DNA of 64,000 bases from Neoechinorhynchus agilis (lineage: Eukaryota > Animalia > Acanthocephala): assembly GCA_051530055.1 (NCBI GenBank), contig CM121342.1, positions 9,191,480 through 9,255,479 of the forward strand. Direction: 5' to 3'. The translations under genes were made by a program, and so were the position numbers. Below, piece after piece: positions 23-31,513 of this stretch. The notes beneath the pieces are model-generated. The model did not search any database. It had not been told where the DNA came from and saw only the letters and a program-made list of their open reading frames with translations. Numbering within the stretch: position 1 is the first letter of the stretch; the number at the start of each line of letters is the position of its first letter.

Positions 23-2760
23 TTTTTTTGATCCCTACTTTTATTAATCTTCATCTCTCGACAATTAACACACTCACCACCTCCCGCCGAATTCCAGCTT
101 TTGTCCTTCCTCGACCGTCGCCATCACGCTGGCAGTATTGCCTCGTTGTACTGCCAGCGAGATATTTTGTCGAAGGAATACGCCTGCTCTTGAGTCTCCG
201 GTTGCCTCTCTCAATTTCTTCGAGAGATCCTGGAGCAGAGAGGGTGCCGAGCTGCCGAGCGCTGCATACGTCTCTACCCCAAAGGGGACAAAATAGTGAG
301 CCCTCGATAAGTGAAGATATTTCCGTATTTTCCTCCCTTCCGCTGCACTGGCGGCACCACCGGCGATTTCGAGGGAGTAGGAGATGTTGCTGGCTGCAAG
401 GGTATCCACACACGTGGCGTCCCGGAGAAGGCATTTGCCCTCCCGCCACGGGAAGATCGAAATTCCATCGGGCCTACGGCCGTCTAGTCTAGAGAGGTGG
501 GCGGGTTCCAGGATGTTCGAGAAGTTCGCCGTTCTCAACGCCCGAGAAATTGCGTTATTGATTTCAGAATGGCGTGAGAACCTTCCTGCTGACCTTCTGC
601 AGACGAGATCGTGTCGCCCGAGAGCATCAACCAAAGACCCACATCGACAGCGATGGGGCGTGCATATCGGGAGACCAAGTCTTAAGGATACTGCGATCCT
701 CGTTACCTCGTCAGTAAGAAGAGTTCCCACTGATGCCAGAGGAACAGCTTCAAACCACGCCCCAGATTCTCGTGTTGAAACTGCCAACAGTCTAGCTCGG
801 AGGACCCCATCGCGAGAACCGGAAAGTAGAGAGCTGTGAGCTCTCGCGACAAGAGGTCCGTCCCAGATCGACTGTCTGAGGCCATTCACGGGAACATGGT
901 TAGCGCCTTTCTGCTGGCACCATTCCTCAACCGCCACCACGAAATCCCGGTCAAGACAGAACTTTTCCTTCAAAATTTTCTTCGATACTGGTAGGCTCCC
1001 CTCAAACGAAGGTCGACTAGTGCCCGAATTCCCAATCCCCCAGATGACACAGGCAAAGAAGCTTGTCGCCACGCCTCATCTGAGAGCTGGACATTTAAAA
1101 TACGATCGATGCATGCCCTCACCTTATCGTCCAGCTTTGCCAATCCTTTTTTGTGTTTGAAAAATGTTGCTGTGCGAACCTTGTACAATAATTTGGGGAT
1201 GAAGAGCGCGTTCCTTATGAGAAACAAGGCTTCATGAGCCGAGAGAGCGCACACTCTATCGCACAGCAACGAAAGCTTCGGTATGATATGGCCGATCTCA
1301 TCTTCCACATTTGAATCGAAGACGCAACTGTCCTGGAGGCTGAGTTGTTCCCGAGTCACGAGTTTCAGGCCTGGAGCTACGGCCTCGAACCCAGCCATTA
1401 GTTCTTTGACTTTGGCGGCGTCTCCAATATTCAGTACAAGGAGCTCACATTTTCCAGCATTAAGCTCAATGCCCATCTTCGAGGTCTCCCTAATCAGCGT
1501 ATCCAAATCGCGCAGTACAACGGAGGGATCACCTCCGAGCGTAGCGTCATCCAAATACCAAGCGTTGAAGCTGGAATGGAGAGAATGCGCTATTGGATTT
1601 ACTGTTAGGGAGAATGCGATTGGACCGAGGGGATCTCCTTGCTGCACTCCTCTTTCGGACCAAATGAGGTGGTCTTCGAAAAGCAAAGGAGTCGCCGTCC
1701 CGTAGGCATTGAGAAAATACTGGAAGGCTTCTGGTGCGTGATCCCTAATTGCGCAGAACATGCTTTCTCTATTGAGAGTTAAAGGCGTTCCGAAAATCGC
1801 ACTTAAGAATCACGCACGGCTCTGAGCTTCTCGTAGCAAAGTTTCGGAGCGAGTGGACAATAGCTTCCGCCCCGCAGGATGTGCAGCAGCCCAGTTGGAC
1901 TCGACGAAGTTGCTGTCCGTTTTTCGCTGTAATACGTTTGCAGAGAATTTTTCCTGCGAGTCGGCGTATCGTCGAAGATACGGCGATGGGACGGATCCCA
2001 CCTTCTTTTTTTGTGAGCCCACACAATGAGGCTCCGAAAAATAGGTCCTTTGCAACGGGGTTCAGGTCCTCTCCAGTCAGGCGGTCGACTATTCGAGTAA
2101 GCGCACTTCCTTGAGAGAAAGCTGCTTCACCAGTTGAAAAGGGCATCATGTCCTTTAGGTGCTGAGGCCGTAGTCCGTCAAGCCCGTGACCCGAACCATC
2201 TGCAAAAGATGAGATGGCCTTTTGTAACTCTGAAATTTGGGTGGGCGTTCTGTCTTGTATGGGAGGAGATGGAATTTCAAAACTTCCGCTACTACATGGG
2301 TGCTTCGACCGGAGTATTTGTAGCGTCTCGCTGTCTCCTTTTGCGAAACTGTCGGAGGATGACAATAACCGAACAGCCCCCGAACATCCCCGTCCACCCC
2401 AGAATCACCGCTGGTGCAGAGGACTAAGCGCGGGAAAGCGAAGAGCCGTGTCCATAAAGGCGCACAGTTCGTTTGCAGGCAATCGTTGAGCAATCCCGTA
2501 AATGCTTTGGCGACCAGATATCGCGCGCCTTTAAGGATCCGTTTCAGGACGTTCCTGGGCAGAAACCGCACGATATCAGGTATCGAAATAGAATCAGTGG
2601 TGATCTGAGGGGTCTCAGGCACAAAAGGTTCGATTAATTGTGGTGGAGAACCAGACCCACTACAGCGGAGATCCCGGGCACCATGGACAAACAAAACCCC
2701 CAGATTCCGTTTCAATGACTGACTGATGAGATCATTCCATTTTACTATGAAACAGATCAC
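23..2760 (-). mobile_element. CRE-clade non-LTR retrotransposon (RT + CCHC + restriction-like endonuclease), frameshifted
   Basis: ORFs 2155-2760, 1769-2365, 970-1761 and 74-1072 give one CRE-type polyprotein in order: LKRI..GAR, GIRPIAV, CDFRNAFN, GVQQGDPLGP, WYLDD, CRCG..D..GRHDLVC, RH..IN, RPDG..PW..GK....DATC, FVPFGVET, NISLAVQRGN. AATAAA on minus at 40-45 followed by A7 (23-29). Confidence 0.88.
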
Positions 2761-8639: not shown

Positions 8640-11600
8640 CTGCACTTGTCTATACTGTTCTGTTTCTTGAGATTGACCCTGATGGATTGAGCACAGGAGT
8701 AAAATATCCGCCTTGAACATCGGTCGGCAATTCAGCATTCATTGGAATTCGCTGCATTTGGCCATAATATCTTTGGGCGTTTGTTGGGATTGACCCTGTG
8801 GTTGAGCACCCGAGTAAAATATCCGCCTTGAACATCGATCGGCACATCAGCATTCATTGGCATTCGCTTCATTTGGCCATAATATTCATGGGGTGTTTCT
8901 TGAGATTGACTCTGTGGATTCGTGGCCGACCCACAATATCCGCCTTGGGCAGCAGCCTGCATTACATTTCCTGCCGGCAATCGTTGATCCTTTGTTAACT
9001 GTTGAGGTCGTATCTGATGAAGCGGAATTTGACGATGTTGGATTGAGCACCCGAATAAAATGTCCGCCTTGAACACCAATCGGCGCATCAGCATTCATTG
9101 GCATTCGCTGCATTTAGCCATAATATTCTTTGGGCGTTTGTTGGGATTGACCCTGTGGATTGAGCACCCGAGTAAAATATCCGCCTTGAACATCGGTCGG
9201 CAATTCAGCATTCATTGGCATTCGCTGCATTTAGCCATAATATTCTTTGGGCGTTTGTTGGGATTGACCTTGTGGATTGAGCACCCGAGTAAAATAGCCG
9301 CCTTGAACATCAATCGGCACATCAGCATTCATTGGCATTCGCTGCATTTAGCCATAATATTCTTTGGGCGTTTGTTATGATTGACCTTGTGGATTGAGCA
9401 CCCGAGTAAAATATCCACCTTGAACATCGGTCGGCACATCAGCATTCATTTTCATTCGCTGCATTTGGTCATAATATTCTTTGGGCGTTTGTTGGAATTG
9501 ACCCTGTGGATTGAGCACCCGAGTAAAATATCCGCCTTGGACATCGGTCGGCACACAAGCATTCATTGCATTCGCTGCATTGGCCATAATATCTTGGGGT
9601 TTATTGAATGACCCTGTGGATGAGCACCCGAGTAAAATATCCCCTTGAACAGCATTCATTGGCATTCGCTGCATTTGCCATAATATCTTGGGGTTTTTGG
9701 ATGACCCTGGATGAGCACCCGAGTAAAATATCCCCTGAAATCAATCGGCACATCAGCATTCATTGGCATTCGCTGCATTTGCCATAATATTCTTTGGGCG
9801 TTTGTTGGGATTGACCCTGTAGATTCGTGGCCGACCCATAATATCCGCCTTGGGCAGCAGCCTGCATTACATTTCCTGCTGGCAATCGTTGATCCTTTGT
9901 TAACTGTTGAGTCGTATTTGATGAGCGGAATTTAAGAGTTATACGACATGAGAACCCCACACCATTGACCCTGTGGATTGAGCACCCGAGTAAAATATCC
10001 GCCTTGAACATCGGTCGGCAATTCAGCATTCAGTGGCATTCGCTGCATTTGGCCATAATATCCTTGGGGAGTTTATTGGAATCGACCCTGTGGATGGAGC
10101 ACCCGAGTAAAATATCCGCCTTGAACATCAATCGGCACATCAGCATTCATTGGCATTCGCTGCATTTAGCCATAATATTCTTTGGGCGTTTGTTGGGATT
10201 GACCCTGTAGATTCGTGGCCGACCCATAATATCCGCCTTGGGCAGCAGCCTGCATTACATTTCCTGCTGGCAATCGTTGATCCTTTGTTAACTGTTGAGG
10301 TCGTATTTGATGAAGCGGAATTTAACGACGTTATACGATCATGAGATATCCGCCTTGACCAGTGGTCGGCATTTTGCATTCGTTGTTATTATTTTCACTT
10401 GCCCATAATATTCTTGGGGAGTTTATTTTATTGACCCTGTAGATTGAGCACCCGAGTAAAATATCCGCCTTGAACATCGGTCGGCAATTCAGCATTCAGT
10501 GGCATTCGCTGGATTTGGCAATAATATTCATGGGGTGTTTCTTGGGATTAACCCTGTGGATTGAGCACCCGAGTAAAATATCCGCCTTGAACATCAATCG
10601 GCACATCAGCATTCATTGGCATTCGCAGTATTTAGCCGTAATATTCTTTGGGCGTTTGTTGGAATTGACCCTGTGGATTGAGCACCCGAGTAAAATACCC
10701 GCCTTGAACATCGGTCGGCACATCAGCATTCATTGGCATTCGCTGCATTTGGCAATAATATTCTTTGGGCGATTGCTGGAATTGACCCCGTTGATTGAGC
10801 ACCCGAGTAAAGTATCCGCCTTCAACATCGGTCGGCACATCAGCATTCATTTGCATCCGCTGCATTTGGCCATAATATTCATAGGTTGTTTGTTGGGATT
10901 GACCCTGTAGATTCGTGGCCGACCCATAATATTCGCTTCGAACTGCAGCCTGTATTGCATTTCCTTCCGGCAATCGTTGAACCTTGGTCAACTGTTGAGG
11001 TCGTATCTGATGAAGCGGAATTTGACGATGTTATCCGGTCATGAGATATCCGCCTTGACCAGTGGTCGGCATTTTAGCATTCGTTGTTATTATTTTCACT
11101 TGCCCATAATATTCTTGGGGAGTTTATTGGAATTGACCCTGTGGATTGAGCACCCGAGTAAAATATCCGCCTTGAACGTCGGTCGGCAATTCAGCATTCA
11201 TTGGCATTCGCTGCATTTGGCCATAATATTCTTGTGGCGTTTGTTGGGATTGACCCTTTTGATTCGTGGCCGACCCATAATATCCGCCTTGGGCAGCAGC
11301 CTGTATTGCATTTCTTGCTGGCAATCGTTGATCCTTTGTCAACTGTTGAGGTCGTGTCTGATGAAGGGGAATTTGACGACGTTATTCGGTCATGAGATAT
11401 CCGCCTTGACCAGTGGTCGGCATTCTAGCATTCGTTGTTATTATTTTCACTTGCCTATAATATCCTGGGGAGTTTATTTGAATTGACCCCGTGGATTGAG
11501 CACAGAATAAATATCCGTGGACATCGGTCGGCAATTCAGCATTCATTGGCATTCGCTGTATTTGGCGATAATATTCTTGGGGCGTTTGTTGGAATTTACC

Positions 11601-11770
11601 CTGTTGTTTCGTACCGACCCATAATATCTGCTTTGCACTGCAGCCTGTATTGCATTTCCTGCTGGCAATCGTTGATCCTTTGTTAACTGTTGGGTCGTAT
11701 CTGATGAAGATGAATTTGACGACGTTATTCGATGATGAGATATCCGCCTTGACCAGTGGTCGGTGTAACG
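8640..11770. repeat. Complex 117-bp tandem array with three related subunit types (~351-bp higher-order unit)
   Basis: ttgacc(c/t)tgtgg recurs at 9147 and 9264 (117 bp); subunits share atatccgccttg(aac/ggc/acc); C-type subunit starts at 11046 and 11397 (351 bp). Confidence 0.92.
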
Positions 11771-12000
11771 TCACTATTGTGAGTGTCCAATATGTTCACA
11801 ACCTCGTCGTACGACAACTATTCCACACTTGTCATTGTCGCTTTCGTGATAATATGAAAGGTCCTCGGGCCCACCCATGAGAGCATACATGAGTTTTTTG
11901 TTCTTCGTCCGCAACACCAACCGAGCAGAAATAGGCATTTAGCTGTTTGTGGTAATTGATCCAGCTTTCTTCTCCTTTCTCAAAACTCCTGAAAGGAACA
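11765..12000 (-). mobile_element. Possible Ty3/Gypsy gag remnant
   Basis: Minus-strand translation MLSWVGPRTFHII...LSYDEVVNILDTH resembles the gag N-terminal motif; stops present. Confidence 0.35.
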
Positions 12001-12179
12001 ATCTGCTTCTCTGCTAAGCGCCACCTGACCGTCGAATTTCGTGAGAATAATTTTCATGAGGTCATCGGAGCGCTTTTGCACATTTTCCATCAATATCGTT
12101 TTTTGCTGCATGAGTTGGGCAAACACAGGTATCCCACCCTTGTCGTCAGATGTAACGTTTCGTGACATGCCTGCAAACT

Positions 12180-12910
12180 ATCTACGACCTTTTTATTACA
12201 CACAGCACACCCCCGCCCAAACACCACCAAATACACCGTTATCCAATGTGCCCTTGAACCTGGTTTATAGGATTCACCACTTTGCTGAATCAAAACAATA
12301 TTATTATGATGTAGATCCATCATGCACAAAATTCTATTCTAGATTTGGCGTACCTCAAGGCTCACCCATTTCTCCTACACTTTTTCTTATAATCACTATT
12401 TTTATTTTTAAAAGTATGGAACACTCACCAATTATTCATCCGCTGATTTATGCGGATGACATTTTTTTATTCCGTTCTGCTAGGTTTATATCGACATTGC
12501 TAGAAAAAATGACGCATTTTTTAAATGAACTATCTCTGAAATTAAAAGAAGCGAATTTGGTTATTAATTTAAAAAATCATGCATCATTCCTTTGACTAAG
12601 TCACGTTTACCAAGGAAATCTCTGGTTACCCTATTAAATACGTCTCCGTTTTTTAAATTTATGGCCATCAAAAAAAACACTCGGCTCTTGGGAGTTGATT
12701 TTCCTGCATTAAATAATAGATTCTTTATAAATACACATTTTAAGAATACAATGAACAAAATTAAAGCGGTCACTATGAGATCTAAGCATTTGCTTATTAA
12801 CAAGAAAACAGTTTACAGCATCCTTAAAACCATAATAGGAGGGTCCCTTTGTTTTTGCGCAAGAGGCCATCCACCCGAATGTAGATACAATTTTTTTTAT
12901 CAAATTTCAT
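12180..12910 (+). mobile_element. Degenerate LINE reverse transcriptase fragment
   Basis: GVPQGSPISPTLF and YADD in ORF 12041-12595, continuing RLLGVDF in 12592-12912. Confidence 0.8.
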
Positions 12911-13127
12911 GATAAACTGAAAAAGTTATTGGATAATTTGGAACTAGATTTTGCCCCTCTTAACTCTTTTTTAATCAAATTATTTTTTACAAAAATGTGG
13001 TTTTATAATCCTGCACTTAGAAATTGTAAGTATGTGAGGGTTGGGGTTCCTGCTTTTAGATTTCAATGCGGTGAGGACCCGCGTAACGCAAAATATGTCT
13101 CCGTTCTGTTTTTAGGGTTATCGTATA

Positions 13128-13282
13128 TTAGAAAAAAAATTTATTTTTTACCAGACAATAATCGATCGTTTTGGAACCCAGTCGATGTACATCAATGCCT
13201 GTCATAGGGGTGTCTAATACGTCCAAGTACCGTAAATGTTTAACGTTTTTAAAAAACCATCATCGAAAACATAAAAATTAGT
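13128..13282 (-). pseudogene. LRR gene, piece 3 (downstream of the Penelope composite insertion)
   Basis: Joined at the TSD it continues LILANTN-FYVFDDGFL, then after a 1-nt homopolymer shift KNVKHLRYLDVLDTPM (LRR consensus). Confidence 0.7.
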
Positions 13283-13346
13283 CATTCATTATTACTGATG
13301 GGTGAAACGAGATTTGTTTTGTGCGGACACCCAGACGTTTTTTATT

Positions 13347-13387
13347 ATGCAAATTTTCGGAGAGCAAAGTCTCCCTCTTCAGGCTTT
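13347..13387 (-). ncRNA. Penelope-type hammerhead ribozyme core
   Basis: CTGAAGA-G-GGAGA(ctttgc)TCTCC-GAA-AATT; stem I weak. Confidence 0.7.
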
Positions 13388-13390
13388 TGG

Positions 13391-13984
13391 TCATCTGAAA
13401 AAATTATTGTCTTGAGAATCTCTTTTAAAAAATGCCTCTTGCCCGGTTGCATCCTGGATCCTGGACCATGTTTTAACCTCTTCCGGCTGCAACATAAGCG
13501 TGACATTACTTTTGTTGCCCTCCATAAGGTGGTCTTCTTTTTTAATCATCAGGGCTTCCATTGTCAACCTCCTCTCCAGGTTTTCTTCCTGCACTAGCAT
13601 CCTGGCGCCCTCAAAATTGACCTCGTGGTCGTGTATGGAGATATGGTTGAAAATCGCTGACGCGGTGTCTCCTTTTCGCACGTTATATTTGTGCTGTTGA
13701 ATGCGTTTCTTCAGTCCCTGGATGGTCTGACCTATATAGACCGCATTGCAATCTTTACACGGTATGCCGTATACCCCTGCGTCGTGCTTCCTTTCTGGCT
13801 TCCTCTTGAAGTACCCCGCAAGGGTTCCACCAGCTTTGGTATAAAACCTACAAGGAATCCCCTGGGTTGCCTTCCTAACGTTCGCCGTACATACGTCGCT
13901 AATGAAGCGGCCTCCCAACCATATCGAGTTTTCTTTTACGCATTCCTTTTGATCTCCTTTTTTGATAGTTCCCCACATCTTCAT
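13391..13984 (-). mobile_element. Penelope-like GIY-YIG endonuclease (5'-truncated ORF)
   Basis: GVYGIPCKDCNAVYIGQT...LKKRIQQH...SAIFNH...R..MEALMI..N. Confidence 0.9.
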
Positions 13985-14455
13985 CCTGGCTTGTTTGATA
14001 CTGAATTAAAAAAAATTAGGACTATGGAAAAAAATCGCAAGATCGATGATCAAAAAAAGAAAAGTCCACACCTTTTTGTTGCAAAGGAAAAGATTTGAAT
14101 TTTTAAACAAATGGAGAGTCCAAAGAACCCATTCTTTCAGTTTGTTACAAATCCAACGGTTCTTCGAAGTTGGAGTTTTAGGGACGACACTGCTTGAGAC
14201 GGTGAAGTTTCTTTTAAAAATGAATTTCAACTTAGCACGGATTGACTCATTGCTACCTCTCTTCTTTTTCAAGATACGGAATATTCACTTTTGTTGTTTT
14301 TAGGATGGATTTTTGTTGTTGTTGTTGTGGACGACTACATCAAATTTTTCCGTTTTTCGAGCATGTAGCCAACCGATAATTGTTTATTTTCAAAATCACA
14401 CACACACCTGCACACTTTGATAACTGAGAAAAAAATTATTGTTTTTTTATGAAAA

Positions 14456-14917
14456 TTACCAATGCCTATAAGGCTCAAAGAAAGCCTCTCGACAGCGAAT
14501 CACGGGGCCACAACTGAAACTCCTTTGTGGTCGACAGATTACTTCGAATGAATTAGGGCGATCTGGTCTTGGTTCGCAAATCTTCGCTGGACAAGGATTA
14601 GTTTGTTCTTGTGGTTGATAAGGAGGCATTGGGCAAATATTCAGAGCATCGTATCGGGTCGAATGACTCGAGAGGACCGGATTACAACAAATCCAAGGAT
14701 TAACTCCTTTTTCATACGATGGACAATCGAAGAATGGCACTGCTCGTTGTTCGTAAGGCCGCATCGGTGGCCGATGCAATGTTCGTTGAAGAACCAATGG
14801 AGGCGGCTGCTGGTAACAGATAGTTTGTTGGCACTTCTTCTCAGGACTACAATTGTTCATGGATGAAAGGTTGAAGCAATTTCGAGGCTGGCCACATCTT
14901 CTATTGCCGAAAGTCAT
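14456..14917 (-). CDS. Cys/Pro/Gln-rich orphan protein, 153 aa (inside the Penelope cargo)
   Basis: Intact ATG-to-TAA ORF in AT-rich surroundings with many C, P and Q residues; no recognised domain. Confidence 0.5.
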   Translation of the reverse strand: MTFGNRRCGQPRNCFNLSSMNNCSPEKKCQQTICYQQPPPLVLQRTLHRPPMRPYEQRAVPFFDCPSYEKGVNPWICCNPVLSSHSTRYDALNICPMPPYQPQEQTNPCPAKICEPRPDRPNSFEVICRPQRSFSCGPVIRCREAFFEPYRHW

Positions 14918-15639
14918 AACAATCGATACACTCTAATCTGTCTCTCGCTCTCTAAGGCACAAGTGTCACTTGGCAACGATGTTTTATGGTTGTTTTTTAA
15001 ATTGAGGTCTCCGGTAGAGGAGGGTAAGTTTGAATGTAGATTTAAAGGAAGTAAGCAGCTAGTCGCTTGGTAACTGTGACTGATGTGGCCTCTTTTTTTT
15101 GAATTCAAAAGTGCCTCAATTTCCATGGAAACTGCGCACGTTAGCAAGATTTTCTTACAAGAAGAGCACATGATGGGCGGCGACTCGGCCAGGAGAAGAA
15201 CCAATGCCAAAAGTAGGCGCAATGCAACAAATCCAAAAAAAGACGGATTATGCAAGTCCGTGGTTTGTGAAAGAGTGAATACAGTTTGCTTTGGAAAACC
15301 TCAAATTGGAGTTATATATTTGCCTATAATAATTGGAATCACAATGCTCATTGTCGCAATATTCAATTTGTCTACTCCGATTAATTTGATCAAGTTTATT
15401 TAATTGAATAAAGAATTTTTTGAAAAAAAAGAAATATGGCGGCTAACGTGGGCTCATTTTCTGAACAGCAGCAAATTAAAAAGAGTTGTCAAGTCTTCAA
15501 AATAGTCGTAATTTCCGATATCTCATTATGATGACTCAAATCGAGTGAGAACGCATTAGAAACGCGACAAAAAAAACAATCGAACATTTTGTATTCGGGT
15601 TTAGAGGTTTCCCAGAAGTATCCTATCTTTTATCTTCTC

Positions 15640-15758
15640 CTCCCCATCGAAAGTGAGTCAGCGCAGAGCGAAATTTTCAAAGGTTTTAGAAATCTGGCAC
15701 CCGGTATAGAATTGATCGCTCTTGACCGGCTGAGTCTTCTAGGGAGCTGCGTTTTTGA
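15640..15758 (+). mobile_element. CRE-clade RT fragment
   Basis: GFRNLAPGIELIALDRLSLLGSCVF matches GFEAVAPGLKLVTREQLSLQDSCVF in ORF 970-1761. Confidence 0.7.
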
Positions 15759-16079
15759 AAACGCATTCAACAGCACAAATATAACGTGCGAAAAGGAGAC
15801 ACCGCGTCAGCGATTTTCAACCATATCTCCATACACGACCACGAGGTCAATTTTGAGGGCGCCAGGATGCTAGTGCAGGAAGAAAACCTGGAGAGGAGGT
15901 TGACAATGGAAGCCCTGATGATTAAAAAAGAAGACCACCTTATGGAGGGCAACAAAAGTAATGTCACGCTTATGTTGCAGCCGGAAGAGGTTAAAACATG
16001 GTCCAGGATCCAGGATGCAACCGGGCAAGAGGCATTTTTTAAAAGAGATTCTCAAGACAATAATTTTTTCAGATGACCA

Positions 16080-16120
16080 AAAGCCTGACGAGGGAGACTT
16101 TGCTCTCCGAAAATTTGCAT
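16080..16120 (+). ncRNA. Hammerhead ribozyme core in the inverted Penelope terminus
   Basis: CTGACGA(16085-16091)-G-GGAGA(ctttgc)TCTCC-GAAA(16109-16112). Confidence 0.7.
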
Positions 16121-16153
16121 AATAAAAAACGTCTGGGTGTCCGCACAAAACAA

Positions 16154-16702
16154 ATAAAAATTAGTATTTGCTAATATTAGTTTTTGAAGTAATTCGTTGT
16201 TTCGAAAAATTCCCGTCGGAAGCAAGGTCAAATCGAAATTTTGTCCGAGATTAAGTACTTCAAGTTTTTCCAGTGCAAAAAATGCATCCTTGTATATCCG
16301 CACGATTCCGTTCAATGACATGTCCAATTGGGTAACATTTGTCCACGAATCGAAGTAATTAGGGCGAATTATTCCTATACGATTTCTTTTTAGAATCAAC
16401 GTTTCCGTCCGATTGTTTCCACGTGGTACTTCTCCAAGATTTGAGCCCAAAATCTTCACAACTTTGACTTTTGGCATTCTGGCTAGAATTTCTGAATTCA
16501 AACTGTGAGCGATTCCACCGTGTACAATAAATTCCTCCATATTTTCGAATTGAAATTCCTCTTCAAACAATTTGTTTAAATCTGCTCGGTATGAAAATTC
16601 CAAGATTTTAAGATTCTCTTCTTTTGCTAATCGACTCAAATTGATCTCATTTAAAGGATTAGCATCGATCCGTATATTTTCCAGTCTTCTAAAATTGAAT
16701 TC
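16154..16702 (-). pseudogene. Leucine-rich-repeat protein, piece 2 (main block)
   Basis: LENIRIDANPL, ETLILKRNRIGII, VTQLDMSLNGIVRI, LEKLEVLNLGQNFDL, LQKLILANTN; frame open 16154-16705. Confidence 0.85.
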
Positions 16703-17262
16703 ACGACGTTATCCGGTCATGAGATATCCGCCTTGACCAGTGGTCGGCATTCTAGCATTCGTTGTTATTATTTTCACTTGCCTATAATATCCTTGGGAAG
16801 TTTATTGGAATTGACCCTGTGGATTGACCACCCGAGTTAAATATCGCCTTGAACATCGGTCGACACATCAGCGTTCGTTGGCATTCGCTGCATTTGGCCA
16901 TAATATTCATGGGGCGTTCGTTGGGATTGACCCTGTGGATTCGTGGCTGACCCATAATATCCGCTTTGGGCTGCAGCCTGTATTCATTTCCTTCTGGCAA
17001 TCGTTGATCCTTTGTCAACTGTTGAGGTCGTATCTGATGAAGCGGAATTTGACGACGTTATCCGGTCATGAGATATCCGCCTTGACCAGTGGTCGGCATT
17101 CTAGCATTCGTTGTTATTATTTTCACTTGCCTATAATATCCTTGGGAAGTTTATTGGAATTGACCCTGTGGATTGACCACCCGAGTAAAATATCCGCCTT
17201 GAACATCGGTCGGCACATCAGCATTCATTCGCATTCGCTGCATTTGGCCATAATATTCATGG
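16703..17262. repeat. Block of the 117-bp repeat family inserted into the LRR gene
   Basis: Same A/B/C subunits as 8640-11770; GAATTC at 16697-16702 and 17263-17268. Confidence 0.85.
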
Positions 17263-17312
17263 GAATTCTGCTTCAAGCAGTCCCAGGACGACATAAATTC
17301 GTTCTACGCAAA
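17263..17312 (-). pseudogene. LRR gene, piece 1
   Basis: Removing 16703-17262 plus one GAATTC restores VCVERIYVVLGLLEAEFNFRRLENIRIDANPL in frame; candidate AG acceptor at 17313-17314. Confidence 0.55.
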
Positions 17313-18800: not shown

Positions 18801-19870
18801 ATAGTTTAAATACAAAATGCAGAATTTTATTCGTAAATTGTTTAAAATGTCATTAAATTTTCGTTTCCCGTTCACAACCCTCTGAAGTAATAAAAATAGA
18901 CTTATACTCCGATCGTAAACCTCTCAAGATTCAACGATAGGATAAAATGCTTCTCCTCAAAGATTTTAACGCGAGGATAGTGTTATGTCTTTTATTATTC
19001 CCTCGTAAACTGACACATCGTCCGGAAAATTCAGATTCATCGCTTGAATCCACGGTAGCCGACATAGCGATTTATCTTCCTTTGTGCTGCAAAGGGAACT
19101 TCAATATTGAGACCAGGTTTCAATCGACCAACCCTGAAAGCTTTGATTTTTACATTTGAAACCAGCTTTAAACTAGTGAAAATTCATATCGTTTCCATTA
19201 GCGTAGAACTAATCTATAGTCTCATTTTCTTATATTTTCAACTTAAAGTACAACTGAAAAATCGTGTGTCGTATTAAATTTAGACAAGCTTTCTACTTGG
19301 TGTTTGACGCTGATTACTAAAAGATTTTCTCTTTATAATTAAATGCGTTTGATTTCGTCAAAATCAGCGCTTTAACTATACGGGACAACGTTTTCTGATT
19401 AAGACTTTATCGGTTGATCGATCGTCTTTAAAAATATATTCCTATAAAGAATTGCGATCTATTTTTGATGTGATAATAATCACTTTGTTTCGGTGTTCGG
19501 TTCATCCCGGTTTTTCGCAATTTCACTCTGCTTAAATCCACGATTCAGTTGTGTTTCTGTATTTTGTTTGGATTGCAACATTCGCAAGGAAATTAGTCAG
19601 GAATCCTAATCGCGCTGTCCTAATTTAGCTCTATATTTCAGCTAGCTCAAGCAGTTTTTATACCGGACGCCGTTCATCGAATTCGGATTTAAGACATAAT
19701 TCCGAATTCGGTGATTAGTGATCGTCGTGCACCATTCAAACATAAGAGAAAATCGGCTATGTTTTATAATTCGCATCAGTGCTTAATTCTGATATTCTCA
19801 AAGGGTGTTTTGTACGTATTTCCATGGTAACAACTACTCTCGTCCATTCCAAATATCGAAGAATGTTAAA

Positions 19871-20892
19871 ATGGAATTCCCCGAAGAAAACGACGAGGCT
19901 CCCATAGTTCCGAAACGAGGTAAAATACTGTGCAGACTTGGCGCCGGTTCGTATGGAACGGTTTACAAGTTACTCAACACCGATACTGGAGAAATAAGAG
20001 CGCTGAAAACCGGATTTGTACGAGATATAAAGCGAATCCAACTGAAAACTGAACACGAAGTCTACGAGGCAGTTGGGAATCGTTTTGGATTTGTTAAATG
20101 TTATAATGCCATTTTTGGCACAAAAGTAAGTTCAATTGAGCTGGACTACATGGGTCCAAGCGTGCATGGCATTGCTGCTCTTCGTCGCACATTTGGATTC
20201 AACGAAAAGACCGTCTTGATGCTCGCATATCAGATGATCAATGCACTGGAATCCTTAAAGCACAGAGTTCAAATCTTTTAGTCTAGAATAAAGATTTGAG
20301 ATCTTAATACACGAATGCCACTTTTTACACCGTGATGTAAAGCTAAGCCACTTTGTTCTTGGTCGTGGTCATCGTTCTCATGAAAGTTCCCTTGATAGAT
20401 TTCGGTCTGTCCAAACGATATAGAGATCGCGAAACTTTGAAACATATCGAGAATGGCACTTCATCGGGGCTTGTTGGGACTCTTCGTTATATGTCTTTGA
20501 ATGCGCATCGAAACAAAGAAACTGCAAGAAGAGATGATCTTGAGTCACTCGGATATGCGCTGGTTCATATGAGCAGAGGAAATCTTCCTTGGATGGGCAT
20601 ACGAGCTATCGACCGGAAGGATAGATATGAACGAGTCTTTGGAATGAAAAGGCGAACGAGTATAGAAACTCTTTGTTCGGGTAGCTGTTCCCCATTTCTA
20701 TTACCATTTATGCGATACGTCCGAGAACTCGAGTTTGATGAGCGTCCCGATTACCAGTACTTAAAGGACCTCGTTCTGTCGCGAATGATTGAGATGCACT
20801 TTCGATTCGATTTTAACACAAACCAGCAAGCGAATAAAACTTTAATTTTAAACGACATTTCTATCTGTACCCCAAGAATTGGAAGCTATTGA
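19871..20892 (+). pseudogene. Casein kinase 1-like protein kinase, disrupted
   Basis: LGAGSYGTVY, RALK, HECHFLHRDVK, LIDFGLSKRY, GTLRYMSLNAH, RRDDLESLGY, LPWMG, LEFDERPDY; 52-nt interruption at 20258-20309 and +1 shift at 20383-20385. Confidence 0.85.
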
Positions 20893-20973
20893 ACTTAAAC
20901 GCGGCTTGTAATGTGTAAACGGCGTCAACTTTTAGGTTTTTAAACGTTTTTTAACAATCCATGCACACCCATA

Positions 20974-21381
20974 ATGTTCGGAAAAACATCGAGATGGATT
21001 TTCAGATTTGTAACCAAAATGGAAAGGCGTCGAAGTAATCAAATTGGAGTTAGTCACAAAAAGTTGCTCTCAAAATATGTGCGAATTGCAGAAAGCATTC
21101 TAAAATCAGGACATGTACAAGTTGAACTTTTGGCTATGGGCGGACCATCGATTTGTAGATGCATCCAATGTGCTAATGCATTGGCTGAAAAATTTGCCCT
21201 TGTTATTGATGGTTAAATTCAAACCGATACCGTTGATCGCGAGGACAGTTCAGAAGGTTTAAGCAACCAATGTTGCAACGATTCGTCGGATGAAGAGGAG
21301 ATCAGCTTGACCGCTACAAACAAGCGAGTATCAACAATTTTAGTCCGAATGACGTTGAACGATCGGCTTATGAGTAAGTAA
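20974..21381 (+). pseudogene. Alba-domain (Rpp20/Pop7- or Rpp25-like) protein with an internal TAA
   Basis: NQIGVSHK..YVRIAESIL..VELLAMG..I.RCI..A..L, stop at 21214-21216, then in-frame IQTDTVD...KRVSTILVRM matching the Alba C-terminus; recognised by eye only. Confidence 0.55.
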
Positions 21382-21511
21382 AACCTTTGAGAAATGAGTA
21401 ATCCGTCCGAGATATTCTGGGAACATATCTTATTTAGCAGCGCTTTTTTGTGTAATTTATAAAATTTCAACGATCAATCAAAGCTTTTAATAATCACAAA
21501 AAAGTGAAAAA

Positions 21512-22492
21512 TCATCTTAGTTGCTTTCGCTCGTGTTTAAAGGGATCTAATTTGTGTCCAGCCATTTCATGTAGCCAATTAAATCTAACGGAAGCATCTA
21601 GAGCGTCCAGCTTTTTCATATCGTCATCATCCAGTTCGATTGAATCTTTTGATCGAAGGTTTTCCTCTAATCGTTTCGGATTGGCTGATTTTGCGATGGT
21701 ATTGTATCCTTTCTGGAGACACCAACGAATTAGAACTTGAGCAGGAGTCTTTTGGTGTTTCTTAGCGATGTCCTTAACGACCTCGTGATCGAGCAGAATT
21801 ATTTCACCAGGTTCCCGTGCGTATGGCGCTCCCAAAGGTGCGTATGCCTGAACCAGAATGCCTTTATGTTGGCAATATTGATTGAGTTCGGTTTGTGCAA
21901 GAAGAGGATGAGCTTCGAGTTGGTGTGCTTCGATGGCTACTTCTGGACACTCCCTTTCAAGACGTTTCAGCTGATCCAAAGTAAAATTACTAACACCCAA
22001 GTGTTTCACCTTTCCTTCCTTTTTCAGTTCACCCATCGCTTTGAAAGTTTCGACATAATCGACATCCGAAAAGGCTACTCGTCCCGTCTCTGGGTCCACG
22101 GGAGATTGATCGTCTGTTCCCTCCTTATATGCAGTTGGCCAATGAATCAAGTAAAGGTCAATATAGTCGAGATTAAGGGCATTAAAAGACTTCTCGAACC
22201 CAACTCGGACTTGTTCTTTTGATCTAAATGTATTCCACAGTTTCGTTGTGATAAATAGATCACTCCGCTTGACGGCTCCGTTTGAATTAGCAATGAACTC
22301 ACGAACCGCTTCACCGATTTCCTTCTCGTTTCCATAAAGCCAAGCTGTATCGATGTGTCGGTATCCAAGTGTCAAAGCGCATTTGACTGCATCGATGGCT
22401 GTGCTATCATTGGATAACCACGTACCTAGTCCGAGTGATGGGATCTTGTCGCCATCCGAAAAGGTTTCGTAGTCAATTGCTTTAACTGGCAT
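21512..22492 (-). CDS. Aldo-keto reductase (AKR1-like), intact and intronless
   Basis: IPSLGLGTW, GYRHIDTAWLY, LFITTKLW, IDLYLIHWP, VKHLGVSNF, QVLIRW..Q, IAKS...RL.EN; catalytic D/Y/K/H present; ATG at 22492. Confidence 0.95.
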   Translation of the reverse strand: MPVKAIDYETFSDGDKIPSLGLGTWLSNDSTAIDAVKCALTLGYRHIDTAWLYGNEKEIGEAVREFIANSNGAVKRSDLFITTKLWNTFRSKEQVRVGFEKSFNALNLDYIDLYLIHWPTAYKEGTDDQSPVDPETGRVAFSDVDYVETFKAMGELKKEGKVKHLGVSNFTLDQLKRLERECPEVAIEAHQLEAHPLLAQTELNQYCQHKGILVQAYAPLGAPYAREPGEIILLDHEVVKDIAKKHQKTPAQVLIRWCLQKGYNTIAKSANPKRLEENLRSKDSIELDDDDMKKLDALDASVRFNWLHEMAGHKLDPFKHERKQLR

Positions 22493-23074
22493 CACTTTTT
22501 GTAAAGTAAAACGCCGTCTTAAAAGGAGTAAAATGTGGATTAGTCAGAGGCTGTGAGTGTAAACATTTCCCCCCCCCAAGAAAAAAGATCAGAGCTTACA
22601 GTCTTTTGCTTGAGGAGAGTTAGAATTTTTTTCTAATGAAAGCTCCGATGACTTAGTTGGAATAACGTCATGGAGTCGTTGCAAGATAACGATTGTCGTG
22701 GCAACGACAACAATTTTTAACCTTTCTTTAATTCAGTTCGCTTGTTTTTTGAGACGAGATCAAATAACTACCAATAAAGCAGTAATTTGGCTAATAAAAT
22801 GTTTGTAGGAATTTGTTGCTTTCTCGGTTTACATGGTAGTTTTTTGTTAAAAATCACGAATTTTCGCCTTATGCTTATTCAGTTTAACTTTAGAAACATT
22901 AGTTTTATTCTGCAGTTCAATTTTATGCCTATTCAAATGTAATCTAATCGTTCTTATCTCCTCTATTTTTTTTGTTTAGACTTACAATCTTCTAAAACGA
23001 AAACGCTTCTAAACAAAAACATTTGACATCTCGTTTAAAAGATTTATGAACTGCTGTCCCGGTTTACTGATTGA

Positions 23075-23290
23075 AAGGGCGGATGCAATCTCCCCCACCT
23101 CGTTGAATAGCCAGGCTTATGTTTTGCATAAGAAATTCTCATGTCCTCAGATCTTCAATGATTCGTCTCAGTCTCTTCGACTATTGATTGACCGGATCTT
23201 GCTCCGCGGTACCAAACGACCCGCTTGTGTGTCGACTTCAGCATCGGTTGCTGCTCTCCTGCTTTAACAGCGGCCAATTTTATGAATCGA
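23075..23290 (-). mobile_element. Highly degenerate CRE-clade endonuclease 3' fragment
   Basis: One minus frame reads RIIEDLRT*EFLMQNISLAIQRG, matching FLRQNISLAVQRG of the 74-1072 ORF. Confidence 0.6.
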
Positions 23291-24226
23291 GTTCGGTTCA
23301 CCTGGTCACGATAATCTGAAATTAAAGACTATAATCGTTTTTAATTTAAAAACAAAACGCTTACCACGCCGTCAGTACAAATCATTTATTTGAAATTTCA
23401 ACGACTATTCTTATTAATCGACAAAAAATCCTTTAAAGATACTCTTTATTCAATTACCTTTGCAGCACTTGCTGAACTGCATTTAGAATATATACAATTT
23501 TTTGAATTAGCTAAGGATTCGAATCTTTATAGCCGTTTTATTCACTTTATTGCGGAATTGATTCTTTTTCTAATTTGACTATCAATGCATGCAATAGAAA
23601 AAACGTACACGGCATAAAAATATACTCTGTATAGAACTACAATTGATTATTTATTCAATATTTCGATCCCCTATCTTGGATCTTCTTCAGAATTGTTTGC
23701 GAGTGTTTACGACGATAGATCGTGTCAGTCGGAAGCACTTGCAAACAATTATGAAGAAGATGCAAGATAGGGTGAATTTAATAAATAATCAATTGAAGTT
23801 CTCCAAAACAACCAACAAACTATGAATCATATTTTCAATATACTCCATATATCCGGACTTCTTTGAAAAAATAACAAAAAGTAGCCATATTTAGCTGTTA
23901 CCTTATTGTTCCAAGCAACGTCAATAATAAAAAAAGGCCTCTCTTTGTTACATTTGAAACTTACAAGCAATACTTGAGAAGGAGGCTGAGGCTTTGAAAA
24001 TTCGCAATGAAGAGTTCGATAAAGCTCGAGCGTGTTACAATTCACCATTGAGAATACACGTCGACTCGAAGGAACAATTGAATCGAATAAAAAAGTGTCA
24101 CACGAATATATCGCTAACTAAACTTTAATGAGGAGACTAAATTTATTAGTTCGGAATGGGTAACAACACGTTTTATTTTGTTTAAGAAGAGGATCCATGT
24201 ACCTCTGGATCTTCGTGATCATTTTA

Positions 24227-25024
24227 GAGTGGGTGACTGATCCGGAATGGATGACGGATCCTGAATGGGTGTTGGATCCTAAGTGGATGACTGATCCGGT
24301 TTGGGTGACTGATCCGGAATGGATGTTGGATCCGAAGTGGATGACTGATCCGGGGTGGATGACTGATCCGGAATGGATGTTGGATCCGAAGTGGATGACT
24401 GATCCGGAATGGATGTTGGATCCGGAGTGGATGTTGGATCCGAAGTGGATGACGGATCCGGAGTGGATGACGGATCCGAAGTGGATGACGGATCCGGTGT
24501 GGATGACTGATCCGGTTTGGGTTACTGAACCGGAATGGATGTTGGATCCGAAATGGATGACTGATCCGGGGTGGATGACTGATCCGGAATGGATATTGGA
24601 TCCGAAGTGGATGACTGATCCGGAATGGATGTTGGATCCGGAGTGGATGTTGGATCCGAAGTGGATGACGGATCCGGAGTGGATGACGAATCCGAAGTGG
24701 ATGACGGATCCGGTGTGGATGACTGATCCGGTTTGGGTTACTGATCCGGAATGGATGTTGGATCCGAAATGGATGACTGATCCGGGGTGGATGACTGATC
24801 CGGAATGGATGTTGGATCCGAAGTGGATGACTGATCCGGAATGGATGTTGGATCCGGAGTGGATGTTGGATCCGAAGTGGATGACGGATCCGAAGTGGAT
24901 GACGGATCCGAAGTGGATGACGGATCCGGTGTGGATGACTGGTCCGGTTTGGGTGACTGATCCGGTTTGGGTGACTGATCCGGAATGGATGTTGGATTCG
25001 AAGTGGATGACGGATCCGGGGTGG
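24227..25024. repeat. 18-bp minisatellite (~44 units) with a 216-bp higher-order repeat
   Basis: Unit like ggatgactgatccggaat; marker ggg(t)(g/t)act at 24303, 24519 and 24735 (216-bp spacing). Confidence 0.95.
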
Positions 25025-25224
25025 TCCTTTGGTTTCTGATTCATCGAGATCCTGTTCACAGCGCCAATTGTTATGTCTTTTATTATTCCCTCGTAAACTC
25101 ACTAACACACCACACTATATTTGCACCCGTAAACACGCGTTTTACCGGTCGCTCATTATCGATCCAAATACTCTATGTCACAGATATAATCTAGAGGAAA
25201 GTTGTTCGGAATTTTTTTTGGTTG

Positions 25225-26793: not shown

Positions 26794-28013
26794 TTGTCAT
26801 TCGAACAGTACGAAAATGTTTCAATTTTGCCGCATTTTTACAAGGTCGCAATCGATATTCGATTGCAAATGATGAGAGAGATTCGAATCAAGGGCAAATG
26901 TCTCGTCGACATTCTTGTGGAAAATCGAACTTATCATGCTGTCAAATTCAGTGTGTTGGAGGACCTTTGTACGGACGTCATACTCGGTCTAGAATTTCAA
27001 AAACTCCACAGAAGCATTCGTTTTGTCTATAATAGTTCCAAAGATGAATTGACAATCAAGCCCCTATCAGACTGTTGCAAATTGATCAAAGCTGGCATGT
27101 TGGAAACCCCATTGTTTGACTCGATCCCTCGGAATATTAAGCCTGTTGTGACCAAATCGCGAATGTTTAGCGTTGAAGACCGTTCGTTTATCGATGGTGA
27201 AGTAAAAAAGTTACTTTATGCAGGCGTGATAGAACCTAGTCGATCTCCGTACCCTACAGGCAACGCTCAGATAGAGCGATTCAATGGCACGGTTTGGAGA
27301 TCTGTGAGCTTAACTATTTATTCACGCGGTTTGCGCATATCGGATTGGGAGGAGGTATTACCTCAAGCCTTGCACGCCGCTCGGTCTCTAATCGTACGAA
27401 CAACCAACTCTACTCCCCACGACCGATTTTTCAGCTTTGCGAGGCGATCGTCTTATGGCTCGTCACTTCCGTCCTGGTTATTGTCTCCAGGTCGAGTATT
27501 ATTACGCAATTTCGTGCGAAATAAAACAGAACCGCTGGTGCGAGAAGTTGAATTGATAGAAGCGAATTCAACACATACAAGAATACGATATGAAGATGGT
27601 ACGGAAAGTTAAGTTTCGACCAAGGACCTTGCCAAATTTCCAGCACTCGATAGCACTAACGATAATTTCATCGAGTGCCCAGACGAAAACAGTCGAATAC
27701 CGGGTTCCGGTGATCCAAACGATTGCGAAACGAAGGTCCCACTAGAAGACAAAAAAACTGTACCACTGATTGCCGTACTGAGATATTCCCGAGTCAACCT
27801 TCTACGAGTGCCCGGAACTCCGCAGATCTATACGAATACGACGAAGACCAGAACGATATCGGTGAAAACTCTAAGAGAGCGAGAATGACGTAATAATTAT
27901 ACGCGACTAATTCTTCGTCGCCATAATTCAGCCGCTTACTAATCCGCACGCACGTACGCATTCACGCATACCGTTATTTTTCAAGTTGAATAAAACTGTT
28001 TGTGTCCACCACA
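26794..28013 (+). mobile_element. Internally deleted Ty3/Gypsy pol (protease, RT start, integrase C-terminus) with putative 3' LTR
   Basis: DVILGLEF, GVIEPSRSP fused to YPTGNAQIERFNGT, W...LP..L.A.R; purine tract before TG at 27886, AATAAA, CA at 28013. Confidence 0.75.
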
Positions 28014-29694: not shown

Positions 29695-31380
29695 TCAGAT
29701 AGAATTAGACTCCGCAAGGGATCTAAAATACACGACAGCAGTCCTGTTATGCGGGCAATTCGCGTCTCTTAAAATCAGGTCATCGTATGTACGACAGTTC
29801 CCTTTGCCTTTACGATGGAATGTCGTTGGCTTCCGCAAAAGGAACTGTTGCACGACCTGTGGGCAAGATGCCTCGGACCGAATTATGTTGCCCGTGAACT
29901 GCAGTCGTCTGCGGCGCAAATATTCACTGGGCGGTTGGACTCCGGCTCTCTTATACAGTGCTTTGTTGGTCACTTTATCTGACCATCTGACCTTGAACGC
30001 CGCACGTAAGAGAGATGAATGATTTTGGTCCAACTGCCCCGTCGCCGTTGGTGACAGTGTCCAAGTCTCTACATTGTAGTAGAGAATGCTCTCAATTAGA
30101 GTCCTGAGCAGCTGCGAACGGAGTTCATCTGGCAAAGACTCATTGTCAAACAGTGGTTTAAGTTGCCCCATTGCTCTCCAAGCTATAGCTCTCCGTCGGC
30201 TGACATCCGTACTCACCTCAGGAACGACAGCTCCCAGATAGACATACCGCTCTATCTGTTTTAATTGCCCAACGCCATTCGGCCCTTCGCCAGAGACTGT
30301 ATGCGCGCCATGCGGAATCGTCAACAATTCCGTCTTTTTCGAATTGATGGTCAGACCAATCATACTCGCCCCCTCGCACAGTCTATTTAGCATGCGTTGA
30401 GCTCCTTCGATTGTTGAGGACATCAATACGATGTCCTCAGCATATGCCATGTAGGAGGCGCGTATCTCAGGATACCTGCGACCTCTTTTCCTCAACAGAA
30501 GAAATCCATCTTCATCATTCGGTAGTGCCCATCTCATTACCCAACCAAGCACCAAGATGAAGAGGAAAGGAGCCAATGTGTCGCCCTGCAGAACACCTGA
30601 AGTGGTGGAAAAGTATTCTGTCAAACCGTCAGCTGTCTTGACGGCAGATCTTGTGTTTTTATATAATGCCATAACGGATGTGACAATGATCGGCGGCACT
30701 CCATACTCCTTTAAGATACCGTCAATCATCGTTCTATTTACCGAATCGAAAGCTCGGTGGAAATCAACAAATACCAGCGTCACATCCGTTTGATGAATTC
30801 GTGCCTCCTCGGGGATCCTCCTCAAAGCCAATATGTGCTATTTGGTGCATCGACCTTTCCTGAAGCCGTTCTGTTCAATTCTTAGAAACGGTTCGAGGAT
30901 TGGCTGAATTCGGCGTCTCAAAATGCTGCTGAAAAGTTTTGCCGTGTTGGACATCAAGGATATACCTCTGTAGTCCTCCATCTTTGTCGAGCAGCATTTC
31001 TTGGGGATCATTGTTAAATGCGCCGTTTGCCAGATTTGAGGTACTGAGCCACCATTCATTATGCCATTCATTATCGGTATGATTTTTCTGGCAATAGATT
31101 CAAACCTCAGTACCTCGGCCATTATCCCATCTGGGCCTGACGCATCATTTTCGCCGCAACGATCGCTTCCTTCACGGAAATCGGTCCAGCGAAGTATGCC
31201 TCAGTGCTTGGGACGATTGTGCCTTTTGCAAGTGCAGGACTCACTTCCAAAGACGATAATGGCGAATTGAGAATTTCCGCAAAATAATTTGCGATTCTCT
31301 TTTTTCTGATTTCCAGGGAGGGACCTTCAATCAAAGTTGGCTGTCTTTGGGATCTTCCTATGAGAGTGTCTATCGCTCTC
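29695..31380 (-). mobile_element. RTE-like non-LTR retrotransposon RT region, frameshifted
   Basis: GPDG, MIPKK, YRGISLM, EQNGFRKGR, FVDFHRAFDSV, GVLQGDTLAPFLF, YAED (mutated YADD), INSKKTE, YVYLG. Confidence 0.88.
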
Positions 31381-31513
31381 CATGCTAAGGAGGTACGAAC
31401 AAAACCTTCCTTATATGCGATGCCGCGAACTGCATCCTCTATCGAAGCTTTTTGCTTTTCATTATAGAGGTTGGCAAGTTCAAGACTTGCAATGCGAGCC
31501 TGAGATCGTTTTC

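Follow-up and report, generated by a model that had tools for sequence, protein, structure and literature searches.

Acanthocephalans are generally grouped with rotifers, and it is a rotifer that provides the closest described counterpart of the locus reported here. [quoted passage not shown] PLE insertions optionally carry a tail, i.e., a 30- to 40-bp extension that is usually found at one insertion end only (PMC8557442), with a 31-bp example in A. vaga (PMC3846280). A purified PLE protein cleaves AT-rich DNA and extends both strands; its reverse transcription starts at two adjacent internal sites in an AC-rich stem-loop, which are not homologous to the target and to which the tail has been traced (PMC11167929). 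Here, we describe an insertion in the acanthocephalan Neoechinorhynchus agilis (assembly GCA_051530055.1, chromosome CM121342.1, about 9,204,762 to 9,207,632) in which two inverted PLE 3′ ends enclose 1,759 bp of foreign sequence, most of it a recent copy of a unique host locus on another chromosome. The phenomenon has already been published for A. vaga, and the N. agilis case is a further instance of it, not a new class of element.

The analysis covered a 64-kb stretch around the insert (the window, whose coordinates are used below unless otherwise indicated) and about 40 kb beyond it, in two loci of chromosome CM121341.1 referred to as L002 and L003 (the latter at about 7.19 Mb). Genomic locus L001 is the window's own positions 11512 to 32492, at 100% identity. 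The insert comprises 2,871 bp (13283 to 16153) and is bounded on both sides by the exact 12-mer ATAAAAATTAGT, which occurs only these two times on both strands of the window; the probability of such a match at a fixed place is 4.4e-7. Because the first two bases of the repeat (AT) could equally end the right PLE arm (...ACAAAACAAAT), the TSD measures 10 to 12 bp and is not fixed at 12. A short TSD at an AT-rich target is what canonical endonuclease-containing (EN+) PLEs produce. When the flanks were joined (13282 to 16166), one open minus-strand frame of 203 codons was obtained (...LQKLILAN/TNFYVFDDGF..., the slash marking the junction). The rejoined open reading frame (ORF) matched the leucine-rich repeat (LRR) family LRR_8 of Pfam at 6e-16 (2.6e-19 for the uninterrupted part alone), and an LRR_5 alignment crossed the junction slightly below Pfam's own cutoff. 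An earlier sequence-only reading of the window had proposed both the 12-bp duplication around this insert and the restoration of LRR coding sequence by its removal, and both proposals held.

The empty site is a joining of flanks that restores the ORF, not an allele. A protein search with the rejoined ORF at 1e-5 returned zero relatives and therefore yielded neither an intact paralogue nor an allele that could stand for a real empty site. The further claim, that the target is an exon, stood only in part. An LRR reading frame is interrupted, as stated. The ORF has no gene model in the annotated collection, has no detectable relatives, and lies between satellite arrays; it is at most a putative exon of a working gene and may instead be what is left of one. 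Together with a non-LTR reverse transcriptase (RT) fragment (12041 to 12595), it sits in a 4.9-kb block (11764 to 16695) bordered on both sides by a 117/351-bp satellite. The satellite arrays (8661 to 11763 and 16697 to 17263) are built of 117-bp units with a 351-bp higher-order period. The same stretch of approximately 52 bp of satellite is found at both block edges (11711 to 11763 and 16696 to 16747, about 90% identical), so the block may itself have been inserted into the array.

The insert ends in two inverted copies of one sequence, with the 3′ ends of both copies pointing outwards. These arms are 397 nt long and identical at 396 positions; the single mismatch (13378) falls on the free N7 position of the CUGANGA motif discussed below. 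The sequence-only reading had recognized the arms as inverted Penelope 3′ ends of about 397 bp, which agrees with these values and with the GIY-YIG match given next. The left copy needs a correction, as it extends over about 718 bp and carries a 29-nt extension missing on the right. Terminal copies with a one-sided tail, as seen here in the 397-nt inverted arms and the left extension, are typical of EN+ PLEs. An alignment of the arm 3′ end with a second PLE of the window was uninformative as to a conserved tail. The minus-strand ORF of the left copy (13391 to 13984) matched the GIY-YIG endonuclease (EN) domain of Pfam (1.5e-5), contained a ...VYGIPCKDCNAVYIGQT... motif, and was 36% identical to the EN ORF of the second PLE (50256 to 50810). 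An exhaustive HMMER search returned 3,818 relatives of this ORF. Most of the long relatives sampled were about 750 to 840 amino acids (aa) in length and combined RVT_1 with a C-terminal GIY-YIG domain, the canonical EN+ PLE architecture. A word-indexed protein search with the PLE fragment returned no match, and an exact-product look-up of the ORF found none on record. On these sequence characters, the arms are the 3′ end of a PLE of the canonical EN+ type. Neither copy (about 718 and 397 bp) reaches the RT domain, as expected for two 5′-truncated copies. Because the arms encode no RT, RT and EN would have been supplied in trans, in agreement with the sequence-only reading.

The second PLE (50233 to 51642, minus strand) is unrelated to the arms. 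Its GIY-YIG ORF is contiguous with upstream ORFs (50807 to 51642) that gave no Pfam RT match at 0.01, and its minimal-hammerhead motif starts at position 50233, about 23 nt past the EN stop codon.

The sequence-only reading had placed a hammerhead core in each arm. Both cores matched a minimal descriptor (CUGANGA, 0 or 1 unpaired base, a helix II of 4 bp or more with G10.1-C11.1 as the closing pair, and GAAA), and neither was matched by the Rfam hammerhead models (whole window at gathering scores; E of ≤10 on 3.4 kb and on 186 nt). The Rfam result is not decisive, because the hammerheads of metazoan PLEs belong to a minimal type that lacks helix III and were first found with a relaxed structure descriptor and not by homology (PMC4209133). 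Six descriptor matches were found in the window (both arms, the second PLE, and three solo sites) versus 0 in 200 shuffles, and three further matches were found in L002 and L003. All of the matches carry an unpaired base after A9 (between 9 and 10.1), which the descriptor does not require, and eight of the nine continue GAA-A-N-N′-U with a palindromic 15.2-16.2, as read by eye from the sequences; the unpaired base and the palindromic A-N-N′-U after GAA are hallmarks of PLE minimal hammerheads (Cervera and de la Pena; PMC4209133). Helix I is short, at about 2 bp, a length shared with the D. virilis variant. The arm 3′ region did not fold better than shuffles (z = 0.42), which is expected because the motif is thought to act as a dimer. 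We regard the arm motif as a probable PLE minimal hammerhead with putative cleavage activity. The solo motifs start at window positions 26179, 23690, and 6482 (all minus strand), at L002 positions 14155 (plus) and 3099 (minus), and at L003 position 8827 (plus). With nine PLE-type motifs in about 105 kb and none in the shuffles, the N. agilis genome appears to abound in truncated PLE 3′ ends.

The foreign interior consists of a 1,620-bp host segment and a 139-bp non-LTR retrotransposon scrap. The items listed for it in the sequence-only reading (a Cys/Pro-rich ORF, a second small ORF, and an RT-adjacent scrap) are all present, but they belong to one colinear segment plus the scrap and not to a many-piece mosaic. 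A donor locus, whose existence had been proposed, was identified on CM121341.1. The copy and the donor are 99.26% identical over 1,625 aligned columns and differ by 5 substitutions (99.7% substitution identity) and 4 indels, all of the latter in homopolymers or a GT microsatellite. Homology to the donor ends at about position 14000, and at the donor, the boundary (L002 position 10920) falls within an AT-rich run (AATTTTTTTTAATTCAGT). One annotated gene model lies in the donor, a stretch of unique host DNA with a single match in the available loci, and the neighbors of the donor are ordinary host genes (proteasome subunit, AAA ATPase, kinase, GTPase, and BTB). In the assembly, no PLE sequence adjoins the donor segment, which is separated by more than 3 kb from the nearest minimal-hammerhead motifs.

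Both cargo ORFs are intact and encode proteins identical to those of the donor. For the Cys/Pro-rich ORF, the exact product is recorded on CM121341.1, with the donor locus as its sole place; a protein search returned only this protein itself, its cluster has one member, and it has no Pfam domain. The divergent 106-aa ORF differs from its donor counterpart by one synonymous substitution; no gene is called there, and an exact-product look-up was empty. Both are orphans without relatives or domains, and the expression "gene capture" used in the sequence-only reading overstates the case. The cargo also includes the 166 bp between the two start codons and flanking noncoding DNA, and it shows neither poly(A) nor a removed intron.

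The scrap was aligned by tblastx with an RVT_1-bearing ORF of the window (970 to 1761; 39.5% identity over 43 aa; E of 3.5e-7 in a small search). As judged from this translated alignment, it is related to the non-LTR element that carries this ORF; the CRE clade named for it in the sequence-only reading is a putative assignment. The element itself (74 to 2760, minus strand) is the nearest relative of the scrap in the window and has a higher G+C content than its surroundings. Its C-terminal ORF (74 to 1072) has a Cys/His motif and seems to resemble a restriction-enzyme-like endonuclease region.

A stepwise origin of the structure through later nested insertions was rejected. No direct repeats surround the cargo or the scrap, and the PLE parts point in opposite directions and so are not one element split by an insert. 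No second copy of an arm, the cargo, or a junction was detected in the 64-kb window or in the approximately 40 kb of L002 and L003. Exact-product look-ups of three junction-spanning ORFs found none on record and hence gave no independent assembly support or extra copies.

The order and orientation of the pieces are informative. Read along the minus strand, the host segment comes first, oriented as its annotated gene, and the left PLE copy follows in sense; on the plus strand, the non-LTR scrap in sense is followed by the right PLE copy in sense. The foreign pieces at the two arms differ, each arm being linked head-to-tail to its own, and the halves of the insert come together at 15619/15620. 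By substitution, the cargo diverges from the donor at 5/1,620 positions (0.31%) and the arms diverge from each other at 1/397 (0.25%) (Fisher P = 1.0). These equal and very low values fit a single recent arrival of everything, and the presence of a second, unrelated foreign piece at the other arm points to capture of the fillers in the same event. In this respect, the sequence-only reading was correct in seeing a single insertion, with non-Penelope sequence between inverted Penelope ends inside one TSD. Its interpretation of the insert as a Pack-type mobile unit was neither demonstrated nor required. A single copy is visible in the sequence compared, and a chimera made during one integration is the simpler account: the arms continue, each in sense, into different pieces, and the right one ends where the tail begins.

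On balance, we lean toward one recent integration by the RT-endonuclease of an autonomous PLE acting in trans, primed on both target strands and followed by template switching on each side. The PLE enzyme would have cut both strands, 10 to 12 bp apart, at the AT-rich site in the LRR reading frame. Each exposed 3′-OH would have primed reverse transcription near the 3′ end of the PLE RNA, at either of two neighboring start sites; the tail would be present on the left copy only because the two sides used different sites. The left side would have copied 718 nt of the PLE template and the right side 397 nt before synthesis continued, in the same polarity, on unrelated templates; for the left side, this would have been an unprocessed transcript of 1.62 kb (or else DNA) from the CM121341.1 locus and, for the right side, 139 nt of non-LTR retrotransposon RNA. 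The two cDNAs would then have been joined at 15619/15620, and repair would have yielded the duplication. The right arm end (ACAAAACAAAT) and the target (ATAAAAATTAGT) are the features of this locus that can be compared with those of the purified protein (PMC11167929). Classic twin priming was rejected, since the arms overlap completely, the same 397 nt having been copied twice. The insertion disrupted the LRR frame and created a dispersed duplicate of a 1.6-kb stretch of unique DNA with two intact divergent ORFs.

Several points weigh against this account. Two-sided priming, template switching, and RNA as the template of the cargo are what we infer from the anatomy, and nothing in the cargo proves an RNA intermediate, given the missing poly(A), the missing removed intron, and the two divergent ORFs. 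The same orientation of both fillers relative to their arms has a 1-in-4 chance under random capture. A single copy was examined, with no full-length family member for comparison of junction microhomology or of the canonical 3′ end. The junctions are those of the assembly, for which MaSuRCA combined Illumina and Nanopore reads that came mostly from pooled worms, with Hi-C scaffolding and BRAKER annotation after repeat masking (PMC12690905).

The alternative that fares best, although we consider it unlikely, is that the host segment and the last ~718 nt of the PLE were already united in a chimeric RNA or a preformed composite, which was mobilized in trans via the PLE 3′ end; the Pack-type idea of the sequence-only reading falls under this alternative. 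Such an RNA could stem from a truncated PLE beside the donor (5′ transduction) or from an older composite, and the inverted right arm would be added at integration. The A. vaga host genes with pLTRs and TSDs have been interpreted in exactly this way (PMC3846280). In N. agilis, the cargo is in sense with the left PLE copy and directly abuts it, and the AT-rich run at the donor boundary is of the kind preferred by PLE endonucleases. On the other hand, the donor has no adjoining PLE in the assembly and its nearest minimal hammerheads are distant, as described above; the sequence compared (window, L002, and L003) contains no second composite copy; and the independent RT scrap at the other arm would still require template switching. 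Two events would be needed where one suffices.

A further alternative, to which we give little credence, is filling at the DNA level. A gap in a head-to-head pair of truncated PLEs, or a break made during integration, would have been repaired with CM121341.1 and non-LTR DNA by synthesis-dependent or microhomology-mediated break repair, so that the cargo never passed through RNA. Long inverted repeats are break-prone, and the cargo is genomic-looking (intergenic sequence, two divergent ORFs, and neither poly(A) nor a sign of splicing). That dispersed duplicates do reach this region is evident from a 5.4-kb DNA-type duplication in the window (aldo-keto reductase plus kinase) from the same donor chromosome. 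Against such filling, the arms and the cargo are equally low in divergence, with no sign of two separate times; each filler shares the sense of the PLE arm beside it; and PLEs are known to carry unspliced, genomic-looking host sequence (PMC3846280, PMC8557442).

Very improbable, finally, is an assembly artifact in which a real PLE insertion acquired a misjoined interior (cargo plus scrap) through chimeric long reads or repeat graph errors: the hybrid nature of the MaSuRCA assembly, made from pooled individuals and R9.4 Nanopore reads with hardly any HiFi data (PMC12690905), the trouble that tandem and inverted PLE structures cause assemblers (PMC8557442), and the confinement of all 4 indels to homopolymers or a microsatellite speak for it, but the 5 substitutions mean that the interior is not simply the donor's own assembled sequence (a point weakened by allelic variation in the worm pool), the three junctions are clean within a symmetric structure with the hallmarks of TSD, tail, and restored ORF, and the cargo, with one match in the available loci, is not a graph-tangling repeat.

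The features of the insert and its target are listed in Table 1.

TABLE 1 Coordinates of the insert, its parts, and the interrupted LRR frame in the window
Feature	Position	Strand	Basis or remark
LRR frame, C-terminal 22 codons (TNFYVFDDGFLKTLNIYGTWTY, then stop)	13217-13282	minus	flank joining
TSD, left copy (ATAAAAATTAGT)	13271-13282		exact 12-mer match to 16154-16165
Left 5′-truncated PLE copy, ~718 bp: end of RT-EN ORF with GIY-YIG, short 3′ untranslated region, tail	13283-~14000	minus	
PLE tail, 29 nt, left end only	13283-13311	minus	missing from right arm
Inverted repeat, left arm	13312-13708	minus	396/397 versus 15759-16155
Hammerhead core, left arm (CUGAAGA-G-GGAGA/UCUCC-GAAA-AUUU)	13351-13382	minus	descriptor scan
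Captured host segment, colinear copy of CM121341.1 (L002 9298-10920; about 6,245,580-6,247,202)	14001-15619	minus	
Cys/Pro-rich ORF, 153 aa (14 Cys, 24 Pro)	14456-14917	minus	identical to annotated donor gene model
106-aa ORF with C-terminal hydrophobic stretch, divergent from Cys/Pro-rich ORF	15083-15403	plus	
Non-LTR retrotransposon scrap, 139 bp, region just after RT domain	15620-15758	plus	tblastx
Right 5′-truncated PLE copy = right arm; tail-less end ...ACAAAACAAAT	15759-16155 (16153/16155)	plus	
Hammerhead core, right arm (CUGACGA-G-GGAGA/UCUCC-GAAA-AUUU)	16085-16116	plus	descriptor scan
TSD, right copy	16154-16165		first 2 nt shared with PLE arm end
LRR frame, N-terminal 181 codons	16166-16708	minus	LRR_8 match

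The 5.4-kb dispersed duplication mentioned above relates window positions 19077 to 24513 to L003, at 95 to 98% identity. It carries an aldo-keto reductase gene and a kinase gene that apparently retains an intron (two ORFs about 70 bp apart). About 830 bp found in L003 are missing from the window copy, and its borders show no PLE ends of the arms' family. The idea that the cargo arrived as part of this duplication was rejected, since the two source segments lie ~0.95 Mb apart on CM121341.1 and the duplication is older (95 to 98%) and lacks the insert. A short-period tandem array of GSVIHFGSNIHS...-type repeats at 24118 to 25108 has several open frames; it is listed in the annotated collection as a 271-aa gene and has a shorter version at the matching place in L003. 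Elsewhere in the window, positions 57868 to 58847 and 31513 to 32492 form a 980-bp inverted repeat (99% identity), and further retroelement ORFs are located at 26794 to 27612 and 29695 to 30831, one with an integrase-like C-terminal part (by eye) and one encoding a 378-aa RT (RVT_1, 3e-16). As a whole, the window is crowded with transposable elements.

Of the retrotransposition mechanisms of animals, PLE integration is understood least, and the N. agilis locus offers a young insertion (about 0.3% divergence) in which all of the junctions can be read and the donor of the main piece is known to the base. Two outward 3′ ends that differ by a tail, each leading in sense into another template, are the in vivo pattern predicted by the in vitro findings. 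If the integration proceeded as we propose, the locus would be an in vivo footprint of the both-strand cleavage and extension known so far only in vitro. It also extends PLE-mediated duplication of host sequences from bdelloid rotifers to a parasitic acanthocephalan, although the captured ORFs have no known function. A bolder generalization, which we offer as speculation and hold to be improbable, is that acanthocephalan PLE integration is routinely primed on two strands with switching to unprocessed transcripts, or that the composite founds or belongs to a mobile, cargo-carrying PLE family. Routine switching would make PLE integration a general source of dispersed gene duplicates complete with promoters and introns. 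Independently of this speculation, duplicates like the one at the present locus would escape recognition as retrocopies because they carry upstream sequence and lack poly(A), which calls for caution in annotation.

Among known systems, L1 retrotransposons reportedly show related behavior in the form of twin priming, template-switch chimeras of the U6-L1 type, and 5′ transduction. There, too, both target strands prime, the RT moves to another cellular RNA, and sense-to-sense chimeras arise within one TSD. In L1 twin priming, however, the inverted and direct parts are adjacent, nonoverlapping sections of one RNA, whereas both arms described here copy the same 397 nt. L1 is also an APE-type LINE, in contrast to the telomerase-like RT with a GIY-YIG EN, the missing poly(A), and the unprocessed cargo of the present case. 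Pack-MULEs and other nonautonomous transposons with gene fragments likewise hold host sequence between transposon termini inside a TSD, but they are DNA transposons that form many-copy families moving with their cargo, whereas the N. agilis composite would be RNA/RT-based and no second copy of it is known. Non-LTR retrozymes resemble it in being nonautonomous, in their PLE-derived hammerhead regions, and in their dependence on PLE enzymes (bioRxiv 10.64898/2026.07.22.740005); they consist of short tandem hammerhead repeats without host cargo, in contrast to two inverted truncated copies with unique cargo.

The likeness to ordinary EN+ PLE insertions is closer (Evgen'ev and Arkhipova 2005; PMC8557442; PMC11167929). 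It includes the outward 3′ ends, the tail at one end, the AT-rich target, the short TSD, the candidate minimal hammerhead just past the ORF, and the AC-rich sequence where the copy ends. Between inverted ends, an ordinary EN+ PLE has its own RT-EN body or pLTRs, whereas in the N. agilis insert, this space is taken up by 1,759 bp of foreign DNA, and both copies end before the RT. The closest counterpart remains the A. vaga case. It contains two direct pLTRs and one inverted pLTR without internal PLE sequence, compared with two inverted 5′-truncated 3′ ends that keep EN coding sequence in N. agilis. Its cargo is an intron-bearing NRPS gene from a 50-member family, compared with a single-copy orphan whose donor is known at 99.7% substitution identity. 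N. agilis further differs in the second foreign scrap at the other arm and in its target, an LRR reading frame. As in A. vaga, there is host sequence between PLE termini and a TSD (8 bp there and 10 to 12 bp here); in N. agilis, the empty site was obtained by joining the flanks, and the donor was identified. In both animals, unprocessed host DNA lies between PLE termini that include an inverted one, and the enzymes would act in trans.

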